Part shown: piece after piece, positions 17,617 to 61,524 of the stretch
How the letters are laid out: every line of letters begins with the position of its first letter
Position numbering within the stretch: position 1 is the stretch's first letter
Assembly (NCBI GenBank): GCA_020184695.1
Contig: JAANOX010000237.1
Location: 124,001 to 188,000 of the forward strand
From: Histomonas meleagridis 2922-C6/04-290x
Taxonomy: Eukaryota > Protista > Parabasalia
Direction: 5' to 3'
Length of the DNA stretch: 64,000 bases
Program-made: the position numbers and the translations under genes
Notes under the pieces: generated by a model
Database searches by the model: none
The model's input: only the letters and a program-made list of their open reading frames with translations
What the model was told of the DNA's origin: nothing

Positions 17617-17890
17617 TTTTAACATAAAATTTTTACGATATTCCTTGAAGCGCCTATGGGGTGCAAGGCAAGTCTGGTGTATTTTAACTTTAAAATTTCT
17701 TCTTTTTGAAATTTTTAGCTCGTCACTTAAACGGTCTTCGATTTTCGTTTCAAAGCTTCAAATCGGTGTGGCGCGTCAACAATTTCATCATAACCATGTA
17801 GAGATGCACACACAATTGCCATGTTAAATAATATGAATATTTTCCAAATGCTATTTTTAAATATAAAAATAATGAAATAAACTTTATAAC

Positions 17891-18760
17891 TTATAAATAA
17901 ATATTTCTTATATCTTCTCGTTCAAGAAGCATTTGAACTATTTTTGTATGACCATTTAATGATGGTAAAATAAGTGCTGTTTCAAATAATTTAAATAATT
18001 TCCAAATATTATTTTGAAATATGAAATTATAAAAAGAAATTTTAAATAAAACAAATAAATATTTTAAGCATTAACATCAAACCCTTCTTGTTCAAGAAGT
18101 AATTTAACTATTTCTGTATGACCATTCCAAGATGCTTCTATAAGTGCTGTATTAAATATTTTAAATAATTTCCAAATATTATTTTGAAAAATCAAATTAT
18201 TAAAATAAATTTTAATTAAAATAAATAAATATCTTTAGCATTAATATCAATTTTTTCTTGTTTAAGAAGTAATTTAACGATTTCTGTATATACATTTTTT
18301 GAAGCATTTGTAAGAACTACAAATATTTTGAAAAAAATTTTTAAAATTTTTATGAAACAATAAAACACTTTAATAAAAATCCAATCAAATAAACAAATAA
18401 TCTTGCTTAAATCGATAGATATATATCTATTGTTAATTAAATAGTTAGAAAGTTCTACATTTCCTGAAAAACCCGAAATTTTCAAAAAATCAATTGGAAT
18501 ATGATTATCGAAGCAATGATAATATTTTTATTCATCTCCATTCCTCTTTCAATCAAAAATGAAAGAATATCAAAATTACAACAAAAAATACATTTTTCTC
18601 CTAATTTTTCTAAATCATTAACCATTTCGATTTTATTCTTAGATAAATATTTAAAGATATTATTTCGATGAAATTCAATTGCAATTTCATATGTACTTTC
18701 GAATGATGAATGATTTTGTTCACACAAATGAATAATTTCTTCATTTCCATCTACATTTTT
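17891..18760 (-). pseudogene. Degenerate DUF3447-ankyrin paralogue (locus B)
   Basis: Fragments EEIIHLCEQNHSSFESTYEIAIEFHRNDIF and GNVELSNYL match the paralogues. Ankyrin unit at 18061-18150 has an in-frame TAA (NA*N). 5' half is missing. Confidence 0.8.
17981..18230 (-). other. Two arrays of 4 x (17-nt interruption + 1 codon) in locus B
   Basis: 18151-18230 retains K-D-G-N; 17981-18060 retains K-H-G-E. Each array is exactly 80 nt. Confidence 0.9.
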
Positions 18761-19044
18761 CTTGTTGAAATATCATACGAATATAATTTATAAATAATAA
18801 ATATTTACAGAGATATTCATAATATTAATACTCTATTTTCAATACATATCTGGTCGGACCCTTAAAAAGTTGGTAGGTTTGAGCGCTTGGCAGAAAGGTC
18901 AAAGAAACTTTTTCAGATGTTTTCTGAGTGAAAACGATCGTCAACCGTATCAAAAAGATTATGAAAACATTTATCGTATTATTTCTATTTTTTAACATTA
19001 GCAGCTTAAAATAGCAAATATAAAATCAAAAATATAAACAATTT

Positions 19045-26070: not shown

Positions 26071-28069
26071 TTATAAAATATTTTTATCATTAATATCAAT
26101 TCCTTCTTGTTCAAGAAGTAATTCAACTATTTCTGTATGACCTTTTTCAGATGCACAAATAAGTGCTGTTTTAAATAATTTGAACAATTTCCAAATATTA
26201 TTTTGAAACAAAAAATTATTAAAAAAAAATTTTTAAATAAAACAAATGAATATCTTTAGCATTAATATCAATTCCTTCTTGTTCAAGAAGTAATTCAACT
26301 ATTTCTGTATGACCATTTAAAGATGCATTAATAAGTGCTGTATTAAATAATTTGAATAATTTCCAAATATTATTTTGAAACAAAAAATTATTAAAATAAA
26401 TTTCATTTTTAGCATTAATATCAATTCCTTCTTTTTCAAGAAGTAATTTAACTATTTCTGTATGACAATTTAAAGATGCATTAATAAGTGCTGTTTCAAA
26501 TAATTTAAATAATTTCCAAATATTATTTAAAAATCCAAAATTATTAAAATAAATATTAAATAAAACAAATGAATATCTTTAGCATTAATATCAATTCCTT
26601 CTTTTTCAAGAAGTAATTTAACTATTTCTTTATGACAACTTAAAGATGCATTAATAAGTGCTGTTTCAAATAATTTAAATAATTTCCAAATATTATTTTG
26701 AAATATAAAATTATTAAAATAAATTCTAAATAAAACAAATAAATATTTTTAGCATTAATATCAATTCCTTTTTGTTCAAGAAGTAATTTAACTATTTCTG
26801 TATAACCATTATTAGATGCTTTCATAAGTGCTGTTTCAAATATTTTAAATAATTTCCAAATAGTATTTTGAAATATCAAATTATTAAAATAAATATTAAA
26901 TAAAACAAATGAATATCTTTAGCATTAATATCAATTCCTTTTTGTTTTAAAACGTATTCAACAAGTTCAATATTTCTTGATCCAGATGAAAATACCAAAA
27001 TATTATTCGGTATTGAATGATCTTTAAGTAAATATTCAACTGAAAAAATATTTCCAATCGTTGCTGCTTCGTTAATAATATCATCATTGATTTTCATTCC
27101 TTCTTTAACTAAAAATGAAAATATTTCATAGTTATGATATGAAATACAAAGCTTTCCTAATTTTTCTAAATTATAAATTTTTTTTAATTTATTCTCATAA
27201 GTATATTTAAAGATATCATTTCGATGGAATTGAATTGCTATTTCATATGCATCTTCAAATGATGAATGATTTTGTTCACATAAATGAATAATTTCTTCAT
27301 TTCCACCTGCAATTGCATATTTTCCTGTATTTTCTACTTTTGCATTGTTCAAGAGTAAATATTTGAAGCATTTAATAGATCCAAAGAATGCTGAATAATC
27401 AATTAATGAAACATTATCTTCATTAATGAATGGACATATTTCATAGAGTGATGGTTCTATATATTGATCAAAATCAAAATTTGTTTGTGATGATATTTCT
27501 TGAAGTTTTTCTGTTTCATCATTTCGAATTATTTTCGCAATTTCATTTGGATTATGTCCTTCTCTAATTAATTTCTGATGTAATTCCCAATCATTCTTTG
27601 AAAGCTCTTCATAATTTGGTAAGGCACTTACATATTCCCTTAAATGAATTGCTAATTCTTCTTTAGACATATAATGTGCAAAATAAGCACTCTGGTTGTT
27701 TTTTACAATGTTCGGTTCAAGAAAATTATGTTCAATCATAGCTTCAAGAAGATAATATGATTCATGTGTATGCTCATTATTAAGAAATTGACCAAATATA
27801 TCAAATATATTGGATTTGATTTTATTACTCTCTTCAAATGTTCTTATTTCTTTTATAATATTCAAAAATAAATCTATATTATTATTTTTAATTACAAAGG
27901 AATAATATATCATTTGAATAATAATTAAATCATAAGATAAAGGATGGATTTCATCAAATTTATTGATTATTAAACCTAAAGATCTAGAGAAATTTTCTTC
28001 ATTCAAACCAAAAATTGCTTGATTTATTGATAGAAGTGTTTCCCAGTCGCAACCTTCCTTTGGCCTCAT
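26071..28069 (-). CDS. DUF3447-ankyrin repeat protein (locus A), interrupted by 19 short non-GT/AG segments
   Basis: ORF 26876-28069 encodes a DUF3447-like region and ends just after GIDINAKD. Five more 90-nt ankyrin units follow (26745-26834, 26575-26664, 26405-26494, 26252-26341, 26080-26169). The 3' end at 26071 is uncertain. Confidence 0.8.
26170..26914 (-). other. Five arrays of 17-nt interruptions with single-codon spacers (locus A)
   Basis: 26835-26914 (4 elements; NDGE), 26665-26744 (4; RYGE), 26495-26574 (4; NWGE), 26342-26404 (3; EFGN), 26170-26251 (4, one 19 nt in homopolymer runs; KFGK). Confidence 0.92.
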
Positions 28070-46259: not shown

Positions 46260-47144
46260 ATGGAAGAATCGTCAGATGACATAGAAGACTATATTGATTA
46301 TCAAGTTGAATGGGAGGACAGAAGTAATTGTGCTTGCAACATAGCATATTTTCCAGTTGGTGGGTTTTACATTATAAATCATTGGCGTAAAAAATTTTTG
46401 CGTCCAATTCTTTCAAACATAGCTTTTATCATTATATTTGCAGACTTAGTATTTGATCTTTATTATTCACTTAATTTTAAAGAGTATATAATTTCGCTAG
46501 TGTTTTGTTCACTTGCATTTTTAGCGACAGCTGTTTCATATTGGCTAATTATTGTTATAGGTCCGGGATATGTACCATATAACTGGAAGTTAACACATAA
46601 AAAGCGATTTACATGGAAAGAAAGGATGAATTATATCACAATATACGACCAACAAGTTCAATGTGCCAGAATGTCCGAAAGGCCAGCAAGGTCATCTTTT
46701 TCCTTGGATGCAAGAAGGTTTGTTCTTCGAGCAGATCATCTATGCATTTGGACAAATTCATGGATCGGATTTAAAAACCATCGTTACTTCATTTTATTTA
46801 CACTCTGGTTTGTTATTTATAGCTGTCTTTGGTTTGCTTGCAGATATAACTGGTATCTTTTAATTCCACAACTTCATTGGTATTATCTTATATCAGCTGC
46901 TTGTGCAATCGTTCTTATAACAGCTGCTAGTTATTCATTTTATTACTTGGTTAAGTCGTTGATAAATCTAAAAAATAACATCACGGGAATCGAAAAGTAC
47001 AATCGAAGGAACGTTAAAATGTACGATAAAGGCTGTATGAACAACTTTGAAGAAATCTTTGGAACAAGGAAGTGCATCATATGCTGGTGTAACCCTTTTT
47101 GTCCAGTTCCACGTGTCCATGATGGTTTTTATAATTCATATTAA
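46260..47144 (+). CDS. DHHC-family palmitoyltransferase, variant DHLC motif
   Basis: Four TM segments, GPGYVP, RADHLCIWTNSWIGFKNHRYF, ITGIE (TTxE-like), C-terminal YDKGCMNNFEEIFG. Confidence 0.88.
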   Translation: MEESSDDIEDYIDYQVEWEDRSNCACNIAYFPVGGFYIINHWRKKFLRPILSNIAFIIIFADLVFDLYYSLNFKEYIISLVFCSLAFLATAVSYWLIIVIGPGYVPYNWKLTHKKRFTWKERMNYITIYDQQVQCARMSERPARSSFSLDARRFVLRADHLCIWTNSWIGFKNHRYFILFTLWFVIYSCLWFACRYNWYLLIPQLHWYYLISAACAIVLITAASYSFYYLVKSLINLKNNITGIEKYNRRNVKMYDKGCMNNFEEIFGTRKCIICWCNPFCPVPRVHDGFYNSY

Positions 47145-47673
47145 ATTTTGTTAATGTTTTTTATTTGTTTCTAATTTTTGAGGGAACTGTGTTCGAATTT
47201 AAAGACAAGGTCTAAGTGAAGTGAAAAACTGACACTATAAACATAAATTTTCAGCATCTGTTCCATACAATTCTAAAAAAAATATAAACATAATAATATA
47301 CATTGTAGGTTAATCTTAAATATTATGTATCATGAAAATATATCAATTTTTTGAAAAAATATTTCATCATTATTTTTTTCACATTAATAATTAATTAAAG
47401 AAATAAAATGAATCATTAATTTTCAATAACGGAAATGGAATTAATTATCGAGACATTGCTAAAATAAAGAAATTCAGAAAAATATTATGAAAATTATTTG
47501 GTATATATCACAAGATTGGGCGTTAATTTAAAATATATATATATAGATCTATATTTAAAGATTCTCTCACATCATAACAAGAAACAATATGAATATAAAA
47601 TGCTTTAATTTAATATTTTTTCATAAATACTTTCACTTAATCAATAAATTTTACTTATTCATTAAAAGCAAAC

Positions 47674-50600
47674 TTACAAAAATCTTGCTCCAAAAAGAAA
47701 TGCTGGATTTGCTTCAGCAAATTTCGGTTTCGGTGCACCCCAACCACCAAATACTTGATGTGCTTGTTTTGTTTCTGATGCCAAAAGTTTTTCATCGTAT
47801 ATAATATCATTTTGCTTCTTAAGTAATTCCACAATATTTTTACAATTTTCATTACCTCCTTGATTTGAGTTTGCGAGCATAATTGCTGATTCACCGTTAT
47901 TATTTACTTCATTTATTTTTATATCTTTTTGTTGAAGAAGTAATTCTACGATTTCAAAACAACCATTTTGCGCAGCGCCCATTAAAGAATTCATAAATAA
48001 TTTTCATAAATTCCGAAGTTTTTATATAAATTTTAAAAAATTATAATAATTATTATTCTTATGATTTATATCGATTTCTTTATGATCGAGTAATAATTTA
48101 ACGATTTCCAAATGATTATTAAAACATGCTAACATAAAAGCAGTACCAAAATAATTAATTAAATTCCAAATTTTATCTATAAATTCCATTTTTTATTAAT
48201 AAACATATAATACTTATAATAAATACCATGAATGTCCAGATCAATTCCTTCATGTTCAAGTAATAGTTTAACTATATCTGTTCTTCCTTCTGAACAAGCA
48301 GTCATTAATGGTGTAAAATATATATATATTTAATTCCAAATATTGTTTTGATATAGAAATATTTTGAATCAATAATATAATGAAATAAATAAACAGATTT
48401 CACATTAACATTAACATCTTTTTTATCAAGAATTAACTTAAAGATTTCGAATTGATTCTTTTTAACTTCTTCAAAATTTGCTTTATTGTTAACAAATCAA
48501 TAAAATAAATCTTAACACGTGTAAATAAATTTGGCTTATTATTATCATTTCCTTGAGAATATTTCATATCGAAATGACATTGATCAGTTTTAGATGCACA
48601 ATGAGAATTCATAAAAATTATAAATAAATCAATTAACAAATAAAAAAACTCTAAATTATCAAAATTAATTCTAAACTCACAAAATGAACTTCGAAAAATT
48701 AAAGTAAACCAATTTGTTTTGATTTGGATTATAAAATGTATTATTATGTTTGTATAAAGACATTTTATGAAGTACAGTTTCAAATGATTGAATGAAATTC
48801 CAAATATTATTTCGAAATATTAAAAAGGCGGAACAAATCGTATTCAGAAGATTAACATCAATTCCTTTATGATCAAGAAGTAATTTAACAATTTCAACAA
48901 AACCTGCAATCGTTGCATACATTAAAGGTGAACCGAATGAATTAAATATATTTCACGAAATTTATCAATGAAATATTAAACTTAAGAAATGAATATCAAC
49001 AAAATTAACATCAATTTCTTTATGTTCAAGTAATAATTTAACAATATCAATGTAGTTATTACGTACAGCAAAAGTTAAAGCTGTTTCAAATAAATTAAAT
49101 TGTTTCCAAATAAAATTTAAAAACATAAAATTAATAAAATAAATTTTAAAACATATTATTAAATAGTTTTAGCATTAATATCAATATCTTTTTGTTCAAG
49201 AAGTAATTTAACAATATCAACACTGCCTTTCCATGTTGCAAAAATAAATGGGGTTTCAAAAAATGGAAACAATTTTTAAAAATATTTTAATATTATATTT
49301 ATTACATTTGTTAATATCAATTCCCTCAACATTAAGAAGAAGTTTCACAAGATCAACATTACCACTATTACATGCATAAAACAATGGCGTTAAAAAAACA
49401 ATAGACAAATTCCAAAGTTTGGAGTAAAACATTGAATTTATAAAACAAATATCGAACAAAAAAATGAAACATTTGCAATATTTATATCAATACCTTTACA
49501 TTCAAGAAGTAATTTGCATATTTTTATATAATTATTTTCAAATGCAAATGTTAATGCAGTTTTTCCTCTAGTATTTTGTTGTGAAATATCAATTCCTTTA
49601 TGTTGAAGAAGTAATTTAACTATTTTTGTATGACCATTTGAAGATGCTAAAATTAGCGCTGTATAAAATATTTGAAATAATTTCCAAATATTATTTTGAA
49701 ATATCAAATTATTATAATATATATTATTTTTAGCATTAACATCAATTCCTTCTTGTTCAAGAAGTAATTTAACTATATCTGTATTACCTTTATAAGATGC
49801 AAACATAATTGCTGTTTTAAATATTTTTAATAAATTCCAATAATTATTTTAAAATATTAAAATATTCAAATAAATAATATCTTTAGCATTAATATCAATT
49901 CCCTTTTGCTCAAGAAGCATTTTCACGTTTTCAATGTTATTTAAAGCACAAGCACAAAATAAAGGGGTTTTATAAAAGCACAAGAAACTCTACTAAATAT
50001 TCTCAACAAACATTAAAAAAACAAAAACAAATATCATAAATATTAACATTAATAGCTTTCCTCGATAAAACATATTTCACAAGTTCACTATTATTTGAAG
50101 AAACAGCATAAGCTATTGCATTATTTGGTAATGCTTTTCCTTCATAAAGATATCTTACAATGAATAAGTTACCACTTGCAAAAACTTCTTCAACGAATTG
50201 AGCATCATAAATATTAATTCCTTCATTTTCGATGAACAAAAAGATATCAAAGTTATCATATTGTATACATTTCGAACCCATATAATTTATTATTTTTATT
50301 TTCTTTTCTTCTTCACTTTCATTATTTCTCATTTGGTTCTGAGAAAATGTTATTGGATTTTGGAAGTTAAAATAACGCAGACATTTTCTTATAAACATAG
50401 TTCTTTCCTGATTATAATCGCATTTGAATAATTTATTTTCATATAGATAATAAAAGATATCATTTCGATGGAACTTAATTGCTGCTTTATAAGCGTTTCC
50501 AAATGTTACACCATTTTGTTCACATAAATGAATGATTTCAATGTTTCCACCTGCTACTGCATATTTACCAACATTTTCAATATAAGCACCATTAACTAAC

Positions 50601-51370
50601 AAATATTTAAAACATTTAATCGACCCATAAAATGCTGCATATTGGATTAATGTAACAGGATGTTCATCACAACTAAAACATTTGGTGAATTTCTCATAAA
50701 TTGATACTGGTAATGGCTCATCAATATCAATTTTATTGTTTGATATTATTTCTTGAAGTTGTTCAGCATCATCATTACGTATAGCTTTTGTGACTTCAGA
50801 AGGATTTCCTTCGTTCATGTTCTTTTTATGTTCTTCAAAATTACTTCCTTTTTGTTGACGAATGATTTCAATAGCTTTCTGTTCCCCAAAGGAGGGTTGT
50901 GCTTTTTGAGCTTGATTTTCAATTGATGAAATTTGTTCTTTTGTTAATAAATGAACAAAGTATATCTTGTTTTCTGGGTGATCAATAAATTGATCAGGTC
51001 TTATTAAATTATTTTCAACTAATTTAACTAATATAAAATTGGACTCTCTAATACCCACTGAAAGTAAATAACTTTTAAATAGTGAAAATATTTGTGGACT
51101 TTCTTTGAGAATTTCTTCTTCCTTTTTTTCAATAAATTGTAAATATTGTATATAGATATTTATATCTTTACGCTGTGATAGATATGATGAATAAATATTT
51201 CTTATTAGAACCAGATTAAATGAAATTGGAAAATTAGTATCAAATAAATCCATGGTTAATTGAACAGTCAATTCAATGTTTTCTTGATTTAAATCAAAAA
51301 GTAAATTACTAATATCTTGAAGATATTTGATTTCTTCTTTGGGATTTCTTGTTGTCATTTTGTTGTCCAT
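47674..51370 (-). CDS. DUF3447-ankyrin repeat protein (locus C), one gene interrupted by 42 short segments; 993 aa after removal
   Basis: 3697 nt minus 41x17 and 1x18 nt leaves 2982 nt = 994 codons, with no internal stop in my manual translation. This joins ORFs 50003-51370, 49438-49806, 49256-49459, 48677-48922, 48433-48783 and 47674-47994. Confidence 0.85.
47992..50032 (-). other. Twelve arrays plus one singleton of 17-nt interruptions (locus C)
   Basis: 49969-50032 (NSRK), 49816-49878 (INGK), 49663-49725 (NDGY), 49391-49470 (DNGL), 49255-49300 (KYKE), 49085-49164 (KYGE), 48932-48994 (NREG), 48779-48841 (TNGE), 48613-48709 (5 elements), 48494-48510 (single), 48315-48394 (YSGF), 48145-48224 (YGGG), 47992-48054 (NKGM). 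Confidence 0.9.
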
Positions 51371-51649
51371 TGCCTGAAAAAAACGTTAAAAAAGTGCCTT
51401 GGCATGGATTGCATAGCTTCTATCAGAGTAGTGTAAACGAAATTAATTCATATTTTTCTCTGAATGGAAATTAATAAATTCATTTTAGATATATAAAATA
51501 TCTCTTTATATATGTAGAGATTAATATTATCATTATCTAATATTGCAATGCCTTAATTAATATTTCGGAAATGAGGGAAAATCAATTCATTATGAAATTT
51601 TCTCAAATGAATATAGTTTCTCATGAAAATATCATTTTCAATTTGAATT

Positions 51650-52490
51650 TTGAAAATATTAAAAAAATCAACAAAATCAATTGATGAATTTGATAAAAAA
51701 TATGATTGGGAATTTCATAAACAATTAATTAAAAAAGGAGTAAATCCTAATGAAATTACAATAATAATTCGAAATTATGAAATAGAAAAACTTCAAGAAA
51801 TATCATCACAAAATGATTTTAAATTTTTGGATCAATTATATGTTTTAGATATTTAATTATGAATGGTGTTAAAGTCGGCAAATATTCATTTGCAGGTGGA
51901 AATGAAGTAATAATTCATTTATGTGAAAATAATAATGGATCATTTTATGAAGCAGCAATTGAATTTCATTGAAATGATATCTTTAAACACCTTTATGAAA
52001 ATAAAATTGTTAAAACGATAAATTTAGATTACTTATATAAGTAATGTATTGTCAATAATTCATTTAATTGTGTAGGAAGGATTGAATTTAGATTCTTTCA
52101 TATATGAATTATCATTGACTGGAATTTATATCTAATAAAATGTTTTCTTGAAAAATATAAACTACTAAATGATATTTATTTCATGAGCAAGTCCAGGAAA
52201 TATTGAACTTGTTGAATATTTTCTTAAATTTGAACAAACTGATATCAATGTTAGAAAAGTTTCTATAAAAAATTGGGAATTTGTTGATATGTCATTATAT
52301 TTAATATGAGTATTTGGCTATTTTTTATGTTTTTTGATATTTATTTGAAAAATTTTATACCCTTATATAATATTTGGAAATAATTTATATTATTTAATAC
52401 ATCAGTTATTAAAGCATTTAAAAATGCTCAAATAGAAATAGTTAAATTGCTTCTTGAACAAAAAGGAATTAATGTTAGCTGGAGGGTCAA
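51650..52490 (+). pseudogene. Degenerate DUF3447-ankyrin paralogue (locus E)
   Basis: WEFHKQLIKKGVNPNEI, GGNEVIIHLCE, AAIEFH*NDIF and GNIELVEYFL fragments with stops and frameshifts; one ankyrin unit starts at 52399. Confidence 0.8.
52259..52398 (+). other. Array of 7 x (17-nt interruption + 1 codon)
   Basis: 140 nt = 7 x 20. Retained codons GGA TAT GGC GAT TAT GGA AAT precede ACA (Thr). Confidence 0.85.
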
Positions 52491-52918
52491 AAAACCAACA
52501 TTTGTATAAATTTTAAAAATGCGATAAAATAGATATCATTGAGATCAGTAAATTTTTCAGAGGTACTAAAACTCAAAATCATGCAATATTTTTTCAACGA
52601 TAATTATATGTTAATAATGGCATCGGTAGGAGATTACAAAAATATTTTTGTTATGAAATTTTGACTGTTAAATCTTTCCAAATTCGATATGATTTCGACC
52701 ATACTTTTTTGGGAATTTTGTGATATTTCCTATATAGTAATATTGTATGTTAGATATGTTTATTTTCTAAATAATTATCTTGTATTATTTTTATTAAAAT
52801 TTAGAAAGTGTGGAACTCAATTTAAAAAAAAAAATTAATTGAAAAATTGTTATTCGAAAACTTAACTTTGGTTTATATGATGAGATAAAAAGATTTTATA
52901 TTTGTTGACTATAAGTTT

Positions 52919-54915
52919 TTACTGTTTATTGTTTTTTTCTTTATCATTGAATAATTTAACTATTTCTTCGTAACCTTTAATTGTTGCAATCATGAGTGGA
53001 GTTAATAATAATTTGCATGAATATCAAATATCAGTTTGAAACATAAAATTGATTAAATTAACACTAAATATAATAAATTGATAGTATAAGTATGAATTAC
53101 TATTCCCTCTTGTTCAAGTAATAGTTTAACAATTTCAGTTTTTCCACATTCACATGCAACTAAAAGAGCTGTTTGAAGAAAAATGAATAAAATCCAAATA
53201 TCATTTTGAAAAGTCATTTTTTACAATTAAATATTATATACTTTAAATATATATCTTTAGCATTAATATCAATTCCTTTTTGTTTAAGGAGCAATTTTAT
53301 AATGTCAATATGACCATATCTAGTTGCCAGCATTAAAGCTGTCCATAATAATTTATAAAAATTCCAAAACTTATTTTTAAGCATTAAATTATTCTATTAA
53401 ATATTGAACAAAATTTTAAAATATCTTTGTTATTAATATCAATGTCCTTTTGCTCAAGAAGTAATTTGACAACATCAGTACATCCATTAAGTGATGCATT
53501 CATTAAAGCTGTTTTAAATTCTTTGAATAATTTCCATTAACAATTTTAAAATATAAAGTTATTAAAATATATTTTGTTCAAAACGAATAAACATCGCTAA
53601 TATTTATATCAATTCCTTCTTGTTCAAGAAGCAATTTTACAATTTCTATATGACCATTTTTTGTAGCAATTATAAGTGCAGTTTGAAATAATATAAAGAA
53701 TTTCCAAATATTACTTAAAAACTTCACATGAGTAAAATTAAAACTTTTTTCATTTATATTAATACACTTTAGATCGATGACATATTTAACGAGTTCAACA
53801 TTTCCTGACAATGAAGAAAAAATTAAAATATCTTTCGGAACAGGTTTCTTATTAAGGAAATATTTAACAAGAAATATATTTCCAATATTAGCTGCTAAAT
53901 TAATAAATGATTCTTCAATATCCATACCTTCTTTTTCCAAAAAATAAAGAATTTGATAATTGTTACATTTAATACAAATTTTTCCCAGTTTGTTTATATT
54001 GTCAATTTTAGACATTTTATTCTCGTAAAGATAATGAAAGATATCATTTCGATGAAACAAAATTGCAGTTTCAATAGTTCCTTCGAAAGATAAATGATAT
54101 TGTTCACAAAGATGAAACATTTCTATGTTACCACCTGCAACAGCAAATATTCCTGAATTATAACTTGCTCCGTTTAGTAACAAAAATTTAAAACATTTAA
54201 TTGATCCAAAAAATGCTGCATAATCAATTAACGAAACTTTTTCTTGATTAATAAATGAACATCTTTCATAAATTGAAGGACAAATTATTTGATTAAAATT
54301 AAAATCATTTTGTGATGATATTTCTTGAAGTTTTTCTATTTCGTCATTTCGAATTATTTTTGCTATTTCATTCGGATTAACTCCTTCTTTAATTAATTGC
54401 TTATGAAGTTCCCAATTATTCTTTGATAGTTCTTTTATATTATCAAAGAAATCTCTACTATGGTAGTATCTAGCTAATCGAAAATCTTCAAATTCTTCAT
54501 TACTTAGAAAATGTGAAAAATAAAAAGATTTATGTTTTTTGCTTTTTATAACTTGAGATGTGATTAATTTATATTCATACAACTTTTCAAGAAGAAAATT
54601 AGATTCTTGAGAATCAGAGCAAAGAAGAATTGTTGTAAATATATGAATTAGCTTGAAATCATTTTTATTGATTTTTTCTTTTTCTTCAATTTCCTGGAGA
54701 AAATGAATACAAATATCGAATTCATTCACGTTTGAACTAAAGCTTAAAAGAAATAATTGACTTAGAACAGTATTGAATGAATATACTAAATTATCATCAA
54801 ATAAATTCATAATCGATTCAATTGATGAATTAAAATTATCTTTATTTAAGCCAAAAACAATTTGTTCCATCAGTAGTAAGATATCATCAGTGATATTTTG
54901 AAATGACGCCTTCAT
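52919..54915 (-). CDS. DUF3447-ankyrin repeat protein (locus D), interrupted by 19 short segments; 557 aa after removal
   Basis: 1997 nt minus 19x17 = 1674 nt = 558 codons. Ankyrin units at 53593-53682, 53423-53512, 53253-53342, 53083-53172, then a terminal unit ending at TAA 52919-52921. Confidence 0.85.
53003..53742 (-). other. Five arrays of 17-nt interruptions (locus D)
   Basis: 53683-53742 (60 nt, 3 elements, EGQ), 53513-53592 (KYGK), 53343-53422 (NNGW), 53173-53252 (NDGQ), 53003-53082 (SYDL). Confidence 0.9.
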
Positions 54916-55965: not shown

Positions 55966-58900
55966 TTGAGCGGCTTTGGTTTGCAACTTTATATTAAGAG
56001 TGCATGCAAGGAAATTTGTTTGGAAACAATTTATATTTTTGCCACTTTTTGTCCAATAAGAAAAAATAAGCGCAAAAAACAACAAATGATTACTTCATCA
56101 ACTAAATTCGATATTACTAAATACATGCATTCAGGTGCATCACAAGATGGAACACTATGTGCTAGTATGGTTGTTTTTTCGCAACTAAATCCAAGAGTAA
56201 ATCAATACCAACAAATCGGACAATTACCTCTTGTAATTAGTCGGAAATCCGCAAACTTAATGATTCTTGTCCTTGGTCCACAGAAGAAAATTCTGACCTA
56301 TGTACAAGTAACACAATCAATTAATTGGATTATTCAATCAAGTGTTTATTGCACATTTATTGATCAAAATAATGTCAGGTGTTTGGCTAGATTTAATACT
56401 GCTGAGGATGCTCAGTTTTTCACAATGATTGCTCTTTCCAAAAAAATCAACATCGGAATTAACAGTTATTGTATTGATCAAGGAAAAAACGATTTACAAA
56501 TTTGTAGTGATAATGAAAATATTTTAGTAAAAGTTAGAGTTTATGATCTAACATTACAAGCAGTTCATGAGGCAATCGACAAAATTGATAACTGTTATAT
56601 TGAAGATTCTATAACATTTCCCAATACAAAAATGAATGGGGTCTATGTAGCCCAAATTTCTCAGTCAATATTTGCTATAATGGAAATAGTTGGAAAGCAA
56701 ATGAAGGAAAAAAAGAAAAGCGGACTCTTTGGCTTCTTCGGTGTTGAAGAAGAAAATGATAATAGCGAAAGTGAAAGTGATTTATTCGGCTTTAATAGAA
56801 AAGAAAGAAATTCATCAGAAAATAGTTCAGAAGAAGAGGAAAATAACTTATTTGGATTTCATAAAAAAGTATCCAGAAAAATAGAGGAAGAAGAGGAAGA
56901 AGAAAATAGTGAAAGCGAAAGTAGTTTTAGAGGTAAACAGAAAAGAGTATATAGAAAAATAGAGGAAGAAGAAGAAAATAGTGAAAGCGAAAGTAGTTTA
57001 AGAGGTAAACAGAAAAGAGTATATCAAAGAATGGAAGAAGAGGAAGAAGAAGAAAACAGCCAAAGCGAAAACAATTTAAGAAGTAATCAGAAAAGAGTAT
57101 ATAGAAAAATAGAGGAAGAAGAGGAAGAAGAAGAAAATCTTGAAGAGGAAAATGAAAGAAGTAAAGAAGAAAATATGGAGGAAATCGAAGAGGAAAATGA
57201 GAATAAAGAGGAAGAAAATGAAGACGAAAATGATGATAAAGAAGATGATATTGAAGAAGATAAAGGTGAACATAGTGATGTTATAGAACATCAAGACAAC
57301 GAAGAAGAAATTGAAGACAAAAAAGAAGAAAATAAAGAAATAGAAAAAGAGAAAGAAGAAACTTCAGAAGAAGATAAAGAAGAAGTTGAAGAAGAATATA
57401 TGGAAGATAAAAATGAAATAAAAGAAAAAGAAACCAAAGAAGAAATTATCGAAGAAACGGAAGAGGAAGAAGTTAAAGAAGAAGAAAAGGAAGGTAAAAA
57501 AGATAAAGAAGAAGACAAAGAAGAAATTAAGGAAGAAATCCTAGAAAGAGTTAAAAAAGAGGAAGTTAAGAAAGATGAAAAAGAAAATATAAAAGAAGAA
57601 ACACAAGAAGAGGAAGATAAAGAAGAAACTAAAGAAAAAATTAAAGAAGATAAAGAAGGGGATGTTAAAGAGGAAGAAACTCAAGAAGAAGAAATTAAGG
57701 AAGATAAAGATGAATCTTCAAAAGTAGAAACTGAGGGAAATGAAGAAGAAATCAAAGAACATAAAGAAAGAAATCCAGAAGAAGTTAAAGAGGAAGAAAT
57801 TAAAGATAAAGAAGAAATATCAGAGGGTGAAATTAAAGAAGATAAAGAAAGAACTACAGAAGAAGAAATTGAAGAAGAAGAAACTAAAGAAGAGGAAACT
57901 AAAGAAAATAACAAAAAAATTAAAGAAAAAACTATAGAAGAAGTTAATGAAGATAAAAAAGAAAATAAAGAAGGAACACCAGAAAAAATTGAAGAAGAAG
58001 TTAAAGAAGAGGAAACTAAAGAAGATAAAGAAGAAACTAAAGAAGAAGTTAAAGAAGAAGAAGAAATTAAAGAAGAGGAAACTATCGAAGACAAAAAAGA
58101 AGAAACTAAAGAAGGAACACCAGAAGAAGTTGAAGAAGAAGTTAAAGAAGAGGAAACTAAAGAAGATAAAGAAGAAACTAAAGAAGAAGTTAAAGAAGAA
58201 GAAGAAACTAAAGAAGAAGTTAAAGAAGAAGAAGAAATTAAAGAAGAGGAAACTAAAGAAAGAACACCAGAAGAAGTGAAAGAAGAAGAGGAAACTAAAG
58301 AAGTTAAAGAAGAAGTTAAAGAAGAAGAAGAAACTAAAGAAGATAAAGAAGAAGTCAAAGAAGAAGAAATTAGAGAAGAGGAAACTAAAGAAGATGAAGA
58401 AGAAACTAACGAAGAAATTAAAGAAGAAGAAGAAACTAAAGAAGATAAAGAAGAAGAAGAAACTAAAGAAGAGGTTAAAGAAGAAGAAAAAGAAGAAACT
58501 AAAGAAGAATTTAAAGAAGAAGAAGAAATTAAAGAAGATAAAGAAGAGGTTAAAGAAGAAGAAACTAAAGAAGAAGTTAAAGAAGAAGAAGAAACTAAAG
58601 AAGATAAAGAAGAAGAAGAAATTAAAGAAGAGGAAACTAAAGAAAGAACACCAGAAGAAGTGAAAGAAGAAGAGGAAACTAAAGAAGATAAAGAAAATGA
58701 AATTGAAGAAGAAGAAATTAAAGAAGATAAAGAAGAGGTTAAAGAAGAAGAAACTAAAGAAGAAGTTAAAGAAGAAGAAGAAACTAAAGAAGTTAAAGAA
58801 GAAGAAGAAATTAAAGAAGAGGAAACTAAAGAAAGAACACCAGAAGAAGTGAAAGAAGAAGAGGAAACTAAAGAAGTTAAAGAAGAAGTTAAAGAAGAAG

Positions 58901-61524
58901 AAGAAATTAAAGAAGATAAAGAAGAAGTCAAAGAAGAAGAAATTAGAGAAGAGGAAACTAAAGAAGATGAAGAAGAAACTAAAGAAGAAGTTAAAGAAGA
59001 AGAAGAAATTAAAGAAGAGGAAACTAAAGAAAGAACACCAGAAGAAGTGAAAGAAGAAGAGGAAACTAAAGAAGATAAAGAAGAAGTCAAAGAAGAAGAA
59101 ATTAGAGAAAAGGAAACTAAAGAAGAGGTTAAAGAAGAAGAAGTTAAAGAAGAAGAAGAAACTAAAGAAGAATTTAAAGAAGAAGAAGAAGTTAAAGAAG
59201 AAGATAAAGAAGAGGAAACTAAAGAAAGAACACCAGAAGAAGTGAAAGAAGAAGAAGAAATTAAAGAAGAAACTAAAGAAAAAGCACAAAAAGAAGTGAA
59301 AGAAGAAGAAACTAAAGAAAAAACACCAGAAGAAATGAAAGAAGAAGAAGAAATTAAAGAAGATGAAACCAAAGAAAATAAAGAAAGAACGCCAGAAAAA
59401 GAAGAAGAAGTCAAAGAAGAAATTAAAGAAAATAAAGAAAAAGAAATTAAAGAAGAAGAAATTGAAGAAGAAGATAAAGAAGAGGAAACTAAAGAAAGAA
59501 CACCAGAAGAAGAAACTCGGGAAGAAATTATCAAAGAAGAGGAAACTGGAGAAAAGGAAGTTAAAGAAGATAAAGAAGCAAGAAAAGAAGAAGAAAATAA
59601 GGAAGAGGAAAATAAAGAAGAAATTAAAGAAAATAAAGAAAGAACACAAGAAGAAGTTGAAGAAGAAGAAACTAAAGAAGAAAGTAAAAATAAAGAAGAT
59701 GAAGTCAAGGAAGATAGAGAAGAAGAAAGAACTCCAGAAGAAGATGAAGAAGTTAAGGAAAATATAAAAGAAGAAGAAACTCTAGAAGAAAATAAAAATA
59801 AACAAGAAGAAATAAAAGAAAACGAAATTAAAAATAAATCTGATGAAGAAGAAGAAAAATCACCACCAAAAGAAAGTTCTGATGAAAAAACCAAAGATCA
59901 ATCAGAATCGTCTAAAGAAAACTCCGAAGCCGAAGCAAAAGGTAAATCTGAGCGGTCTAAAGAAAACTCCGAAGCCAATGAAGATAAATCTGAATCATCT
60001 AAAGAAAGTTCTGATGAAGAAACCAAAGATCAATCAGAATCGTCTAAAGAAAACTCCGAAGCCGAAGCAAAAGGTAAATCTGAATCGTCTAAAGAAAGTT
60101 CTGATGAAGAAACCAAAGATCAATCAGAATCGTCTAAAGAAAACTCCGAAGCCAATAAAGATAAATCTGAATCATCTAAAGAAAGTTCTGATGAAGAAAC
60201 CAAATACAAATCAGAATCGTCTAAAGAAAACTCCGAAGCCGAAGCAAAAGGTAAATCTGAATCATCCAACGGAAGTTCTGATGATAAATTCATCCAAATT
60301 CTGAGTGATGATGAAATTGGCACAAAAAAAACAACAAAACGTCGGAAGCCCGCTCCAAAGCATGACGACACCTCCGATGACTTCAGCGATCTCTTTGCCA
60401 AGCCAAAGAAGAAGAAGCAGCGAATATCACTTTTCGACGCAGATTTGACAGATTCGTCAACAGATGCATTTGATTTTGACTTCACCAAACCTGCTAAGAC
60501 TAAGTCTAAGAAACGTATCACGTTATTTGATGATATAATACCCTCGACAAAGCCCAAAAAGTCCAAAAAGAAATCGAAATCAAAATCCCGAAAGTCACTT
60601 TTTGATAGTATTGACGATAGCGCACCACCAGTCAAATCCACTGAATTACCTAAAGAAGAATTGAAAGCCGAAATCGGTTCTTCCGTAGAAAAAGTTCATA
60701 AGGATCTTGGCACTTTTGCCTATGTTGATAAAGCACAAAAGTTTACATCTGCTTCTGAACTTAGGCAATCAATGCGCTCACGATTTGCGCAACTTGAATC
60801 CCTTATCAAGTCCATTACTATTCAAGAGTGTAAAACTACACAACTTGATTTACCAAATATTGTACTCAAAGAAAGTATTCATAAATTAGTAAATGACATT
60901 AAATCCAAAGATGCGCGACTTAAACAAATGCAAATTCTTATCGATTTCCTTGACGAAACTACAACATCGACATTTGAAAAAGATGAAATTCTAAAAGAGC
61001 AGAAAAAGCGTCGAATGGAAATCAAAACAGAAGAAACGCGAACAGAATCCGCAATTTCGGAACTTGTCGAAGTGCAAAAAGTTGTAAATTCGCTCGAGCA
61101 AGAACTTTCTGATATTTCCATATCATTGCAACAATCGGAGAATGAACTTCGCGCGAAACACGAAGCGGAAATGTACCGAGAAGCGTCTGAAAGCATCGAA
61201 GAGCAAAAGCCGATCGAGCAGAAAATGATCGAAGCGAAGAATCGGAAAGTTAACATCGAAATAAAACTGATGCCATTACTTGACGAAAACAAGAAAATGA
61301 AAGAAAACGTCGACACGAAATCGCTTAAAGAAATTGAAGAACTGAAAAGTAACGCACCGAAAATGCTGAAGGAAGTCGTGCTCGAGATGAAGGAGGGACT
61401 GGAGGCGATGCTGGAAAGCGCGTTCAACCCATTGAGGGAATACGACGGAGATATGGTGGCAACGGCGGTGAAAAACGCGTTGAAGAAACAAGGAATGTTA
61501 TGTATGCAAAAGAGGAAAGTGTAA
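55966..61524 (+). CDS. Giant Glu/Lys-rich repeat protein with FKBP15-like N-terminal PH/WH1-type domain and C-terminal coiled coil
   Basis: 1852-aa ORF. N-terminal YCTFIDQNNVRCLARFNTAEDAQFF resembles FKBP15 YSTFYDDQRQNWSIMFESEKAAVEF (from memory). About 1000 aa of E/K repeats. True start probably MITSS. Confidence 0.8.
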   Translation: MSGFGLQLYIKSACKEICLETIYIFATFCPIRKNKRKKQQMITSSTKFDITKYMHSGASQDGTLCASMVVFSQLNPRVNQYQQIGQLPLVISRKSANLMILVLGPQKKILTYVQVTQSINWIIQSSVYCTFIDQNNVRCLARFNTAEDAQFFTMIALSKKINIGINSYCIDQGKNDLQICSDNENILVKVRVYDLTLQAVHEAIDKIDNCYIEDSITFPNTKMNGVYVAQISQSIFAIMEIVGKQMKEKKKSGLFGFFGVEEENDNSESESDLFGFNRKERNSSENSSEEEENNLFGFHKKVSRKIEEEEEEENSESESSFRGKQKRVYRKIEEEEENSESESSLRGKQKRVYQRMEEEEEEENSQSENNLRSNQKRVYRKIEEEEEEEENLEEENERSKEENMEEIEEENENKEEENEDENDDKEDDIEEDKGEHSDVIEHQDNEEEIEDKKEENKEIEKEKEETSEEDKEEVEEEYMEDKNEIKEKETKEEIIEETEEEEVKEEEKEGKKDKEEDKEEIKEEILERVKKEEVKKDEKENIKEETQEEEDKEETKEKIKEDKEGDVKEEETQEEEIKEDKDESSKVETEGNEEEIKEHKERNPEEVKEEEIKDKEEISEGEIKEDKERTTEEEIEEEETKEEETKENNKKIKEKTIEEVNEDKKENKEGTPEKIEEEVKEEETKEDKEETKEEVKEEEEIKEEETIEDKKEETKEGTPEEVEEEVKEEETKEDKEETKEEVKEEEETKEEVKEEEEIKEEETKERTPEEVKEEEETKEVKEEVKEEEETKEDKEEVKEEEIREEETKEDEEETNEEIKEEEETKEDKEEEETKEEVKEEEKEETKEEFKEEEEIKEDKEEVKEEETKEEVKEEEETKEDKEEEEIKEEETKERTPEEVKEEEETKEDKENEIEEEEIKEDKEEVKEEETKEEVKEEEETKEVKEEEEIKEEETKERTPEEVKEEEETKEVKEEVKEEEEIKEDKEEVKEEEIREEETKEDEEETKEEVKEEEEIKEEETKERTPEEVKEEEETKEDKEEVKEEEIREKETKEEVKEEEVKEEEETKEEFKEEEEVKEEDKEEETKERTPEEVKEEEEIKEETKEKAQKEVKEEETKEKTPEEMKEEEEIKEDETKENKERTPEKEEEVKEEIKENKEKEIKEEEIEEEDKEEETKERTPEEETREEIIKEEETGEKEVKEDKEARKEEENKEEENKEEIKENKERTQEEVEEEETKEESKNKEDEVKEDREEERTPEEDEEVKENIKEEETLEENKNKQEEIKENEIKNKSDEEEEKSPPKESSDEKTKDQSESSKENSEAEAKGKSERSKENSEANEDKSESSKESSDEETKDQSESSKENSEAEAKGKSESSKESSDEETKDQSESSKENSEANKDKSESSKESSDEETKYKSESSKENSEAEAKGKSESSNGSSDDKFIQILSDDEIGTKKTTKRRKPAPKHDDTSDDFSDLFAKPKKKKQRISLFDADLTDSSTDAFDFDFTKPAKTKSKKRITLFDDIIPSTKPKKSKKKSKSKSRKSLFDSIDDSAPPVKSTELPKEELKAEIGSSVEKVHKDLGTFAYVDKAQKFTSASELRQSMRSRFAQLESLIKSITIQECKTTQLDLPNIVLKESIHKLVNDIKSKDARLKQMQILIDFLDETTTSTFEKDEILKEQKKRRMEIKTEETRTESAISELVEVQKVVNSLEQELSDISISLQQSENELRAKHEAEMYREASESIEEQKPIEQKMIEAKNRKVNIEIKLMPLLDENKKMKENVDTKSLKEIEELKSNAPKMLKEVVLEMKEGLEAMLESAFNPLREYDGDMVATAVKNALKKQGMLCMQKRKV
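56875..59870 (+). repeat. Purine-rich coding repeat tract (GAA/AAA-based EEETKEEVK and ERTPEE modules)
   Basis: Shuffled modules such as GAAGAAGAAACTAAAGAAGAAGTTAAA and GAAAGAACACCAGAAGAAGTGAAA; plus strand overwhelmingly A/G. Confidence 0.95.
59872..60270 (+). repeat. Nine-unit 45/45/42-nt coding minisatellite (order A B C A B A C A B)
   Basis: A=ESSDEETKDQSESSK, B=ENSEAEAKGKSESSK, C=ENSEANEDKSESSK; 7x45 + 2x42 = 399 nt. Confidence 0.9.

Follow-up and report, generated by a model that had tools for sequence, protein, structure and literature searches.

Locus C and its interruptions

Locus C is a coding region on the reverse strand of the window, the 64,000-nt stretch of Histomonas meleagridis contig JAANOX010000237.1 analysed here, and extends over 3697 nt (47674..51370) from an ATG at 51370 to a TAA at 47676–47674. 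The preliminary description had proposed that six apparent ORF fragments in this region are one 993-aa gene with 42 interruptions. Deletion by script of 42 individually listed segments, all 17 nt long except an 18-nt one at 50032–50015 and amounting to 715 nt together, gave exactly the claimed ORF of 2982 nt, which was in frame with codon 994 as its sole stop. The four elements quoted earlier as examples were all in the deletion list (49470–49454, 48838–48822, 49430–49414 and 48994–48978). The elements of locus C always interrupt between codons. The contig's public annotation calls no gene at locus C.

The joining of the fragments into one gene also held. An N-terminal ORF of 455 aa matched the Pfam family DUF3447 (1.6e-10, above the cutoff) and Ank, the pieces downstream are ankyrin repeats (Ank 1.4e-14 and others), and transcript contigs link them. 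The host gene therefore has the organization of the trichomonad DUF3447 family, a DUF3447 domain and then tandem ankyrin repeats, and its homologues were found in Histomonas, Tritrichomonas and Trichomonas. As had been suggested, locus C is not a pseudogene: it is transcribed, and the repeat cores are under purifying selection, with core codon positions 1 and 2 diverging more slowly than position 3 (0.28 versus 0.48). Two neighbours, loci B and E, are genuine pseudogenes. A ciliate genetic code, with TAA read as Gln, seemed to explain two in-frame loops and was ruled out by the true frame shifts between repeats and by a first exon of 455 codons containing neither TAA nor TAG.

All features of the gene lie on the reverse strand. 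The first exon (50033..51370) is uninterrupted and encodes the DUF3447 domain and the first ankyrin repeats. In loop C0 (49969..50032, 64 nt) the 18-nt element, a T-run, is followed by elements at 50011–49995 and 49991–49975, with the single codons aat and agt between elements and then tat aaa. Loops C1 (49816..49878) and C2 (49663..49725) are both 63 nt and contain three elements each, at 49875–49859, 49855–49839 and 49835–49819 in C1 (codons att, aat, gga and aaa) and at 49722–49706, 49702–49686 and 49682–49666 in C2 (codons aat, gat, gga and tat). Loop C3 (49561..49572) is an element-free 12 nt, act aga gga aaa (TRGK), and shows the form that the other loops take once their elements are gone. 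Loop C4 (49391..49470, 80 nt) has four elements (49470–49454, 49450–49434, 49430–49414 and 49410–49394) separated by gat, aat and gga and followed by tta, giving D-N-G-L, while loop C5 (49255..49300, 46 nt) has two (49294–49278 and 49274–49258). Loop C6 (49085..49164, 80 nt) again has four (49164–49148, 49144–49128, 49124–49108 and 49104–49088; codons aaa, tat, gga and gaa). In loop C7 (48932..48994, 63 nt) element placement was picked by a position weight matrix, giving 48994–48978, 48974–48958 and 48951–48935 with codons aat, cgt gaa and ggt, and in loop C8 (48779..48841, 63 nt) elements are at 48838–48822, 48818–48802 and 48798–48782, with codons acg, aat, gga and gaa.

Outside the ankyrin loops are an array of five elements (48613..48709; 48709–48693, 48689–48673, 48669–48653, 48649–48633 and 48629–48613) with the single-codon spacers gaa, aga, aga and ttg, and a singleton, ATTTATTTTATTGATTT (48494..48510), flanked by aag and gtt so that the position of the cut is unable to slide. 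Further downstream, loops C9 (48315..48394) and C10 (48145..48224) are 80 nt with four elements each, at 48394–48378, 48374–48358, 48354–48338 and 48334–48318 in C9 (codons tat, tct, gga and ttt) and at 48224–48208, 48204–48188, 48184–48168 and 48164–48148 in C10 (codons tat, gga, gga and ggt), where TRF detected a 20-nt period. Loop C11 (47992..48054, 63 nt) has elements at 48051–48035, 48031–48015 and 48011–47995 and codons aat, aaa, gga and atg. The last exon and a short 3′ UTR (47637..47991) include two element-free ankyrin repeats with an Ank match, a C-terminal tail and the stop at 47674. The X3 RNA contig was colinear over 47637–47888 and carried a further 19 letters, unaligned, past 47637, and the transcript probably ends near this position. 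Up to seven elements were seen in series with single-codon spacers.

Comparison of RNA and DNA contigs

RNA was compared with DNA using assembled contigs from runs of different studies, in which the RNA label of the runs was guessed and the RNA study may have used another isolate. Transcriptome contigs were without the elements, whereas DNA contigs were colinear with the window and kept them. At eight sites the RNA departed from or resumed the genome at the predicted nucleotide, and contigs did so at the predicted boundaries 50032, 49470, 48612 and 52259. The junctions of locus C documented individually in RNA are a minority of the 42, namely the 5′ edges of C0 and C4, the 3′ edge of the five-element array and the singleton. 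RNA contigs were colinear with the first exon from 51383 down to 50032 with 0 mismatches, and the X3 and X4 contigs departed from the genome at 50032 in C0 and at 49470 in C4, in each case the predicted boundary extended by 1 nt that matches by chance. The X3, X4 and X5 contigs all resumed at precisely 48612, preceded by 138 letters that did not align. The 17 nt of the singleton were missing from the X5 contig (101/101), and the same deletion was found in 0/1707 in DNA. The X3 and X4 contigs kept the singleton, which in a transcript leads to a stop 25 codons further on.

A 17-nt deletion at 53235 was likewise present in 165/165 in X4 RNA and 0/2605 in DNA. In loop D4 of the neighbouring paralogue, RNA aligned to 53082 and resumed at 53005, with eight unaligned letters between that matched the single-codon model exactly (a-gttatgat-tta). 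One contiguous intron per loop, 68 nt in D4, would leave no extra letters, yet the RNA keeps 12 non-contiguous letters, and a single large intron was also contradicted by family-level RNA with GGA inside processed loops. At the family level, the loose ends of RNA had the sequence GAT AAA AAT GGA AAA ACA GCA and those of DNA were element sequence; at 49724 in loop C2 they were ...TAT GGA AAA ACA GCA... and AT-rich element sequence, respectively.

The share of locus C 31-mers was 0.65 in the best RNA run and 0.91 in the DNA runs; full processing of the transcript predicts 0.664 and no processing 0.977. For locus A the shares were 0.44 in RNA and just 0.73 in DNA, the latter because its repeats are near-identical. 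The preliminary description had left open whether the elements are dealt with in RNA or in translation, and the contig evidence assigns their removal to RNA. Some sites are processed incompletely, in particular elements starting with T. RNA contigs kept elements 2–4 of loop D3, and of the four T-starting elements in the window, two are in this loop and one is in pseudogene B, with the fourth at 48374–48358 in locus C. As some elements are kept, processing is slow, regulated or only partial, and would yield some truncated transcripts.

Length and sequence of the elements

Restoration of an ORF was dropped as a test of 17-nt elements. A dynamic-programming search found a stop-free path from ATG to stop with just 20 deletions for each length that is 2 mod 3 (5, 8, 11 ... 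38), so an open frame after removal is not discriminating by itself. Three other properties were not chosen by the parser. The gaps between HMM-anchored ankyrin cores were 12, 46, 63 or 80 nt (12+17m) in 20/22 loops of the window and 80 nt in 10/11 loops of relatives, and uninterrupted control ankyrin genes had a 12-nt gap. A metagenome scan with a GIDINAK-coding 21-mer recovered no ankyrin genes other than unrelated ones whose loops are of the normal 12 nt, and these were used as negative controls. The isolated codons of the 80-nt loops included no stops among 96, and the codon after element 3 was Gly in 22/24 loops; together these codons restore the hairpin of the ankyrin repeat. The 17-nt elements are thus real, as seen in the length lattice, the codons with their Gly, interiors that are saturated at a fixed length and RNA contigs without elements.

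Elements have the form RTTT(A)…(A)TTT, with about 5% C, 5% G and a G+C content of about 9%. A purine was found at position +1 in 79/83 elements in the window and 44/44 in relatives. Most elements begin with ATTT, and 15/83 in the window begin with G. Positions 2–4 and 15–17 are TTT, T being the usual base at +2, and there is an enrichment of A at position 14, which lies four bases upstream of the 3′ cut. The earlier observation that highly diverged elements keep a length of 17 was borne out, since their interiors are near saturation (mismatch 0.5–0.6) and diverged relatives likewise hold 17 nt. Length was also said to be the main constraint. It is indeed fixed while the interior is free, but it is not the sole constraint, as the +1 purine and the terminal TTT are kept too. 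Lengths other than 17 were found only at two T-homopolymer elements, of 18 nt in locus C and 19 nt in locus A, which are either assembly errors or breaches of the length rule.

None of 85 elements had GT-AG, GC-AG or AT-AC (U12-type) ends, an AG 3′ end, a trichomonad GTAYGT or ACTAAC motif, or the N3-CDG ... CHG-N5-6 signature of Euglena nonconventional introns. Folding of eight 80-nt loops gave MFE z-scores of -2.0 to +1.4 with no recurrent fold and no signal, and the five-element array gave the sole value of -3.1. Single elements with their flanks had a mean MFE of -2.1 kcal/mol. A helix or stem-loop at both cut sites, as in bulge-helix-bulge or IRE1 substrates, was not found in the loops or elements folded. 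A weight-matrix scan of the non-ankyrin genes in the window found nothing convincing.

Diverged relatives in ENA metagenomes have the same architecture, with elements that are always purine-first and mostly have TT at the 3′ end; one third begin with GT. Among 1.8 billion representative proteins, no full-length processed homologue was found. The best matches were truncated N-terminal ORFs, and the metagenome homologues are called just as far as the first element. A literature search found no description of such elements.

Interpretation of the elements

Several known systems share features with these elements. Ciliate internal eliminated sequences are also short, AT-rich and precisely excised from coding regions. 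They are TA-bounded and removed from DNA, whereas the elements here are retained in DNA runs and missing only from RNA; an element of that type would be absent from somatic DNA, and the deleted form had a depth of 0 in DNA contigs. Translational bypass elements (phage T4 gene 60 and the Magnusiomyces mitochondrial 'byps') are likewise short frame-breaking inserts in intact frames, with many possible per gene, but remain in the mRNA. The tRNA and archaeal bulge-helix-bulge introns and the IRE1-cut HAC1/XBP1 introns are short and non-spliceosomal, and resemble the elements in the enzyme-set distance between two cuts that is proposed here; the metazoan XBP1 intron has a fixed length of 26 nt. These introns need defined helices or stem-loops, formed partly from exon sequence. 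The elements here differ in being so poor in G+C, in structure that is not above shuffled controls and in permitting 3-nt exons. Euglena nonconventional introns (PMC12501133) are similar in having no GT-AG, in being excised and in coexisting with conventional introns in the same genome; they vary in length and carry paired motifs, unlike the fixed 17 nt without signature or fold signal seen here.

The elements could also be ultra-short spliceosomal introns with degenerate ends, removed successively by a reduced parabasalid spliceosome whose geometry sets the length. Such introns are 15–16 nt in Stentor, 18–21 nt in the Bigelowiella nucleomorph and 23–25 nt in Trichomonas type B, and they are likewise removed from RNA, AT/T-rich and very narrow in length spread. 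The tightly fixed length of the elements is like that of the 15-nt Stentor and 18-nt nucleomorph introns (PMC12316389). The purine at +1, the T at +2, the GT-first third of the relatives' elements and the A at position 14 are consistent with this origin. However, ultra-short spliceosomal introns have GT-AG ends, a branch motif and normal exons between them, and confirmed Trichomonas introns are at least 23 nt with conserved 5′, branch-site and 3′ motifs (PMC12316389). The absence of AG and AT-AC ends and of the trichomonad motifs from all 85 elements, and 3-nt exons that leave no space for exon contacts, make a spliceosomal origin unlikely.

It is very improbable that no RNA processing is involved, with the RNA derived from an isolate or paralogues whose DNA is without the elements, or the deletions produced by reverse transcription or assembly. 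The different sources of RNA and DNA, and the use of contigs instead of reads, leave room for this explanation. Against it, the RNA contigs had 0 mismatches to the window over 150–670 nt beside the junctions, and the deleted form was never found in DNA contigs (0/1707 and 0/2605). The same RNA study has the singleton both kept and removed and keeps elements 2–4 of D3, which indicates that the genome of the RNA source carries elements. Junction microhomology was at chance level (0 nt in 30/85), arguing against template-switch artefacts, and every deletion restored the frame and the ankyrin consensus. Similarly slight is the chance that ribosomes hop over elements kept in the mRNA, or that locus C is a decaying pseudogene whose ORF comes from free choice of deletions. 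Many deletion lengths can force a stop-free path, loci B and E next to it are true pseudogenes and some elements are kept in RNA contigs; because two sites show partial retention, translational bypass keeps a slight residual chance. The elements were nevertheless missing from RNA contigs at the eight tested sites, and the 31-mer share agrees with a processed transcript. The loop lattice, the Gly codons and the stop-free single codons did not depend on the parser, and the cores are under purifying selection.

Locus C is therefore likely to be one expressed DUF3447/ankyrin-repeat gene with non-canonical micro-introns, in which 42 AT-rich elements would be cut from the pre-mRNA and the flanks, many of them single codons, joined to give an mRNA of 993 codons. 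The best reading is that an element is defined by its termini (5′ R-U-U-U and 3′ U-U-U) and its exact length. Because a 3-nt exon cannot carry signals, recognition would reside within the element, and the putative cutter would gauge a fixed distance between its two cut sites. By exclusion and analogy, we tentatively prefer over the spliceosome a mechanism in which a two-site endoribonuclease of the ruler type makes the cuts and a tRNA/RtcB-type RNA ligase then joins the ends, a scheme that is possible though short of probable. Arrays probably grew by tandem duplication, both of a 20-nt module made up of an element and a codon and of complete 170-nt repeat units, and loops of 63, 46 and 12 nt may have arisen by precise loss of single elements.

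These 17-nt elements spaced by single codons point to an undescribed kind of RNA excision. If confirmed, they would form a new class of intervening sequence that is fixed in length, has neither RNA structure nor GT-AG or AT-AC ends and stands in arrays isolating single codons, and would point to an unknown ruler-type activity that cuts and joins RNA. Ideas of exon and intron recognition would be challenged, again because 3-nt exons have no capacity for signals. Incomplete removal at certain elements could add a regulatory layer to gene expression or catch elements as they arise and disappear. The chances are about even that a trichomonad lineage excises RNA by a non-spliceosomal system not known before, which reads no more than a purine at the 5′ end, short U-tracts and a length of exactly 17 nt, producing single-codon exons and a gene family hidden from annotation. 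Gene finders miss or truncate genes that bear elements. With locus C unannotated and metagenome homologues called only to the first element, proteins are missing from the proteome of this parasite of poultry and from those of its relatives.

Locus C and the spacing of its ankyrin cores

The window consists of AT-rich eukaryotic DNA in which most ORFs are long, uninterrupted and read in the standard code. A 455-codon ORF on the minus strand (51370–50006) encodes a DUF3447 domain and ankyrin repeats, a combination typical of trichomonads, and its named homologues are from Histomonas meleagridis, Tritrichomonas foetus and Trichomonas vaginalis. On the 3' side of this ORF, a three-frame reading revealed well-conserved ankyrin cores of 30 residues (T-A/P-L ... 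G-I-D-I-N-x-x-D), which follow one another with repeated changes of frame and AT-rich stretches between them. Locus C lacks a gene call in the public record WSYJ01000171.1 (GCA_020186115.1), which encodes a neighbouring window protein. The gene table of the public contig contains no gene across bases 1–8685 of L005, which cover locus C (47674–51370, minus strand) and a DHHC palmitoyltransferase ORF (46260–47144, plus strand).

The preliminary description had joined the fragments of locus C into one interrupted gene, and scripted removal of 42 blocks (715 nt in total, 41 being 17 nt long and one 18 nt) did produce 2982 nt, or 993 codons with one terminal stop. The blocks include a five-block array (48709–48613, minus strand) and a singleton (48510–48494, minus strand), both outside the hairpin. 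The ORF is weak evidence alone because, in a dynamic-programming search, as few as 20 deletions sufficed for a path without stops, whichever deletion length congruent to 2 mod 3 was used. The loop-length lattice, stop-free single codons, Gly codon, control genes and loops of relatives were not free choices of parsing.

A hidden Markov model (HMM) of the 30-residue core was built, all cores were placed in six frames, and the gap from each core end to the next core start was measured. Gaps fitted 12+17m nt in 20 of the 22 loops in the window (one of 12 nt, one of 46 nt, five of 63 nt and 13 of 80 nt), with single loops of 60 and 82 nt off this lattice. At 12 nt, the loop act aga gga aaa (TRGK) is the normal ankyrin hairpin, and uninterrupted ankyrin genes (L002 of H. 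meleagridis and several from unrelated metagenomic organisms) also have 12-nt loops. The longer loops contain the same four hairpin codons split apart by 17-nt blocks, loop 49470–49391 reading aat [17] gat [17] aat [17] gga [17] tta acg, or N-D-N-G-L-T. No stops were found among the 96 single codons of 24 80-nt loops; the frequency expected from composition is about 10%, and the chance of this outcome roughly 4e-5. The ankyrin hairpin requires Gly at the codon after the third block, where a Gly codon was present in 22 of these 24 loops.

Removal of the elements from RNA

Assembled contigs, not reads, were compared, using a DNA run (X1) and, from another study, runs whose RNA label was guessed (X3–X5); the DNA contigs were colinear with the window, and the RNA contigs were colinear with 0 mismatches through the first exon and then behaved as predicted at eight sites. 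At the 5' edge of loop C0 in locus C, the RNA match ended at 50032 (predicted exon end 50033), the next RNA base being the same as the first element base, and at that of loop C4 it ended at 49470 (predicted 49471) with the same 1-nt chance match. Three RNA runs restarted exactly at 48612, the first base past the fifth block of the five-element array, with 138 unaligned letters upstream. The 17 nt of the singleton (48494–48510) were left out in X5 (101/101) versus 0/1707 in DNA, and its ends are 5'-ATTT...ATTT-3' because its cut cannot slide. For the first block of loop D3 in the paralogous locus D, 17 nt were left out at 53235 (X4 165/165, DNA 0/2605), equivalent by a 1-nt shift to the predicted 53252–53236. 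The RNA alignment reached 53082 at the 5' edge of loop D4, one chance-matching base beyond the predicted exon end (53083), and at the 3' edge 8 unaligned letters preceded a restart at 53005, where the single-codon model predicts a + gttatgat + tta. One contiguous 68-nt intron in this loop is incompatible with those 8 letters. In pseudogene E, the RNA contigs ended at 52259, the start of a seven-block array.

Family-wide, the loose-end consensus was GAT AAA AAT GGA AAA ACA GCA (D-K-N-G-K-T-A) in RNA and ...ATTTATTTGTTTTATTT AAA ATTTATTT.... in DNA. Among sampled 31-mers of the locus, the share found was 0.65 in the best RNA run and 0.91 in DNA (predicted 0.664 fully processed, 0.977 unprocessed), which agrees with processing without proving it, since exon coverage may be incomplete. 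The preliminary description would have been refuted had neither processed RNA nor protein existed; processed RNA was found as element-free junctions in RNA contigs, individually for only some junctions of locus C. Excision of the elements takes place in RNA; it is precise, keeps the phase and leaves exons of a single codon.

Element anatomy and candidate mechanisms

The elements lie between codons without exception and have the consensus R-T-T-T-A-(t-t-n-a-n-a-n-t)-A-T-T-T, with 9% G+C; their terminal dinucleotide classes include AT..TT (39), AA..TT (13) and GT..TT (8). Mismatch between repeat units was 0.28 at core codon positions 1+2, 0.48 at position 3, 0.13–0.26 at element positions 2–4 and 15–17, and 0.5–0.6 in the element interior, near the random expectation for composition. 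The earlier proposal that length is the main constraint was supported, as 17 nt is kept though the interiors are near random, but the conserved ends show that length is not the only one. The exceptions, of 18 nt (50032–50015) and 19 nt (locus A), both sit at long T-runs. RNA folding of the loops was no better than in shuffled controls.

Because 3-nt exons cannot hold signals, we infer that recognition lies within the element and uses the 5' purine, the U-tracts and exact distance. Our favoured mechanism, put forward tentatively, is one in which an endonuclease would cut at two sites whose distance it measures like a ruler, and RNA ligation would follow. A degenerate spliceosomal process ranks next but is unlikely: the elements function like introns, but none of 85 had GT-AG, GC-AG or AT-AC termini or the trichomonad GTAYGT or ACTAAC motifs. 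The Euglena CDG/CHG signature was likewise found in 0/85 (motif definitions from PMC12316389 and PMC12501133), and the elements failed the defining tests of U2, U12, Euglena nonconventional and BHB/IRE1 introns, bypass elements and IES. Other mechanisms or an artefact take up the remaining probability; against a template-switch artefact, microhomology at the junctions was no more than chance predicts. A full-text literature search did not find such elements described, and in the genome paper on two H. meleagridis strains the only introns reported are conventional and scarce (PMC8529796).

Paralogues, relatives and incomplete removal

The four positions within a loop differ from one another in consensus; the 170-nt unit was therefore probably duplicated in its entirety, and the loops of 63, 46 and 12 nt come from precise losses of individual elements. 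Locus E (51590–52500, plus strand), a decayed paralogue with in-frame stops, e.g. tga in the FHRND motif, and persisting transcription at low depth, contains a seven-module array (52259–52398; 7 x [17+3] = 140 nt; G-Y-G-D-Y-G-N) which shows that 20-nt modules can multiply too. Locus A (26072–28069, minus strand), also a paralogue, has five interrupted loops, and removal of 19 elements gave an ORF of 557 aa whose loops are textbook examples (AKD-NDGE-TAL, AKN-RYGE-TAL ...); its 19-nt element, in loop 26251–26170, owes this length to a T9 run. Locus B (17778–18800, minus strand) is another decayed paralogue, with a broken N-terminal part, a stop within a core (gct taa aat) and two 80-nt loops whose elements are almost identical to those of locus A. 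Elsewhere in the window, 56000–60000 is strongly skewed (GC skew up to 0.59, AT skew up to 0.71) and lies in an 1852-codon ORF (55966–61524, plus strand) whose first 1000 residues had no Pfam match and whose product is probably a low-complexity, purine-rich repeat protein.

Four ENA metagenome contigs (L001, L004, L017 and L018; samples ONAT22-1 and BRZ), from relatives or diverged paralogues, encode N-terminal domains 34–41% identical. Of the 11 gaps measured in them, 10 were 80-nt loops, and there was one further in the L001 tail; four-element loops were at 1326–2252 in L017, 1557–1976 in L018, 2217–2296 in L004 and 1864–1943 in L001. Their blocks are strongly diverged yet 17 nt long, a larger share begin with GT, GC or GA, and in gene calls the proteins break off at the first element. 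The N-terminal domain of the H. meleagridis homologue P0011 gives way to a region (L002 5100–6180) made up of a long tandem repeat (GLTSNTTSAPSNSTGFKSGF-like units) and then of ankyrin repeats that are uninterrupted and have loops of the ordinary 12 nt.

Removal was not always complete. In locus D (52920–54915, minus strand; four 80-nt loops), all four elements were gone from loop 53082–53003 in RNA contigs and the first alone from D3 (53252–53173), blocks 2–4 being kept in X4 and X5. Of these three kept blocks, two begin with T and the other has AAT at its end. An initial T occurs in just 4 of the 83 elements in the window, three in D3 or pseudogene B and the fourth in locus C (48374–48358), and all 44 elements of the relatives begin with a purine. 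This natural variation at element starts suggests that a 5' purine is required for removal. Keeping the remaining D3 elements leads to an in-frame stop, and the locus D gene may be dying or alternatively processed. The singleton of locus C was kept in X3 and X4 contigs and, because translation through a kept singleton would reach a stop after 25 codons, the products may be truncated or regulation may be at work.
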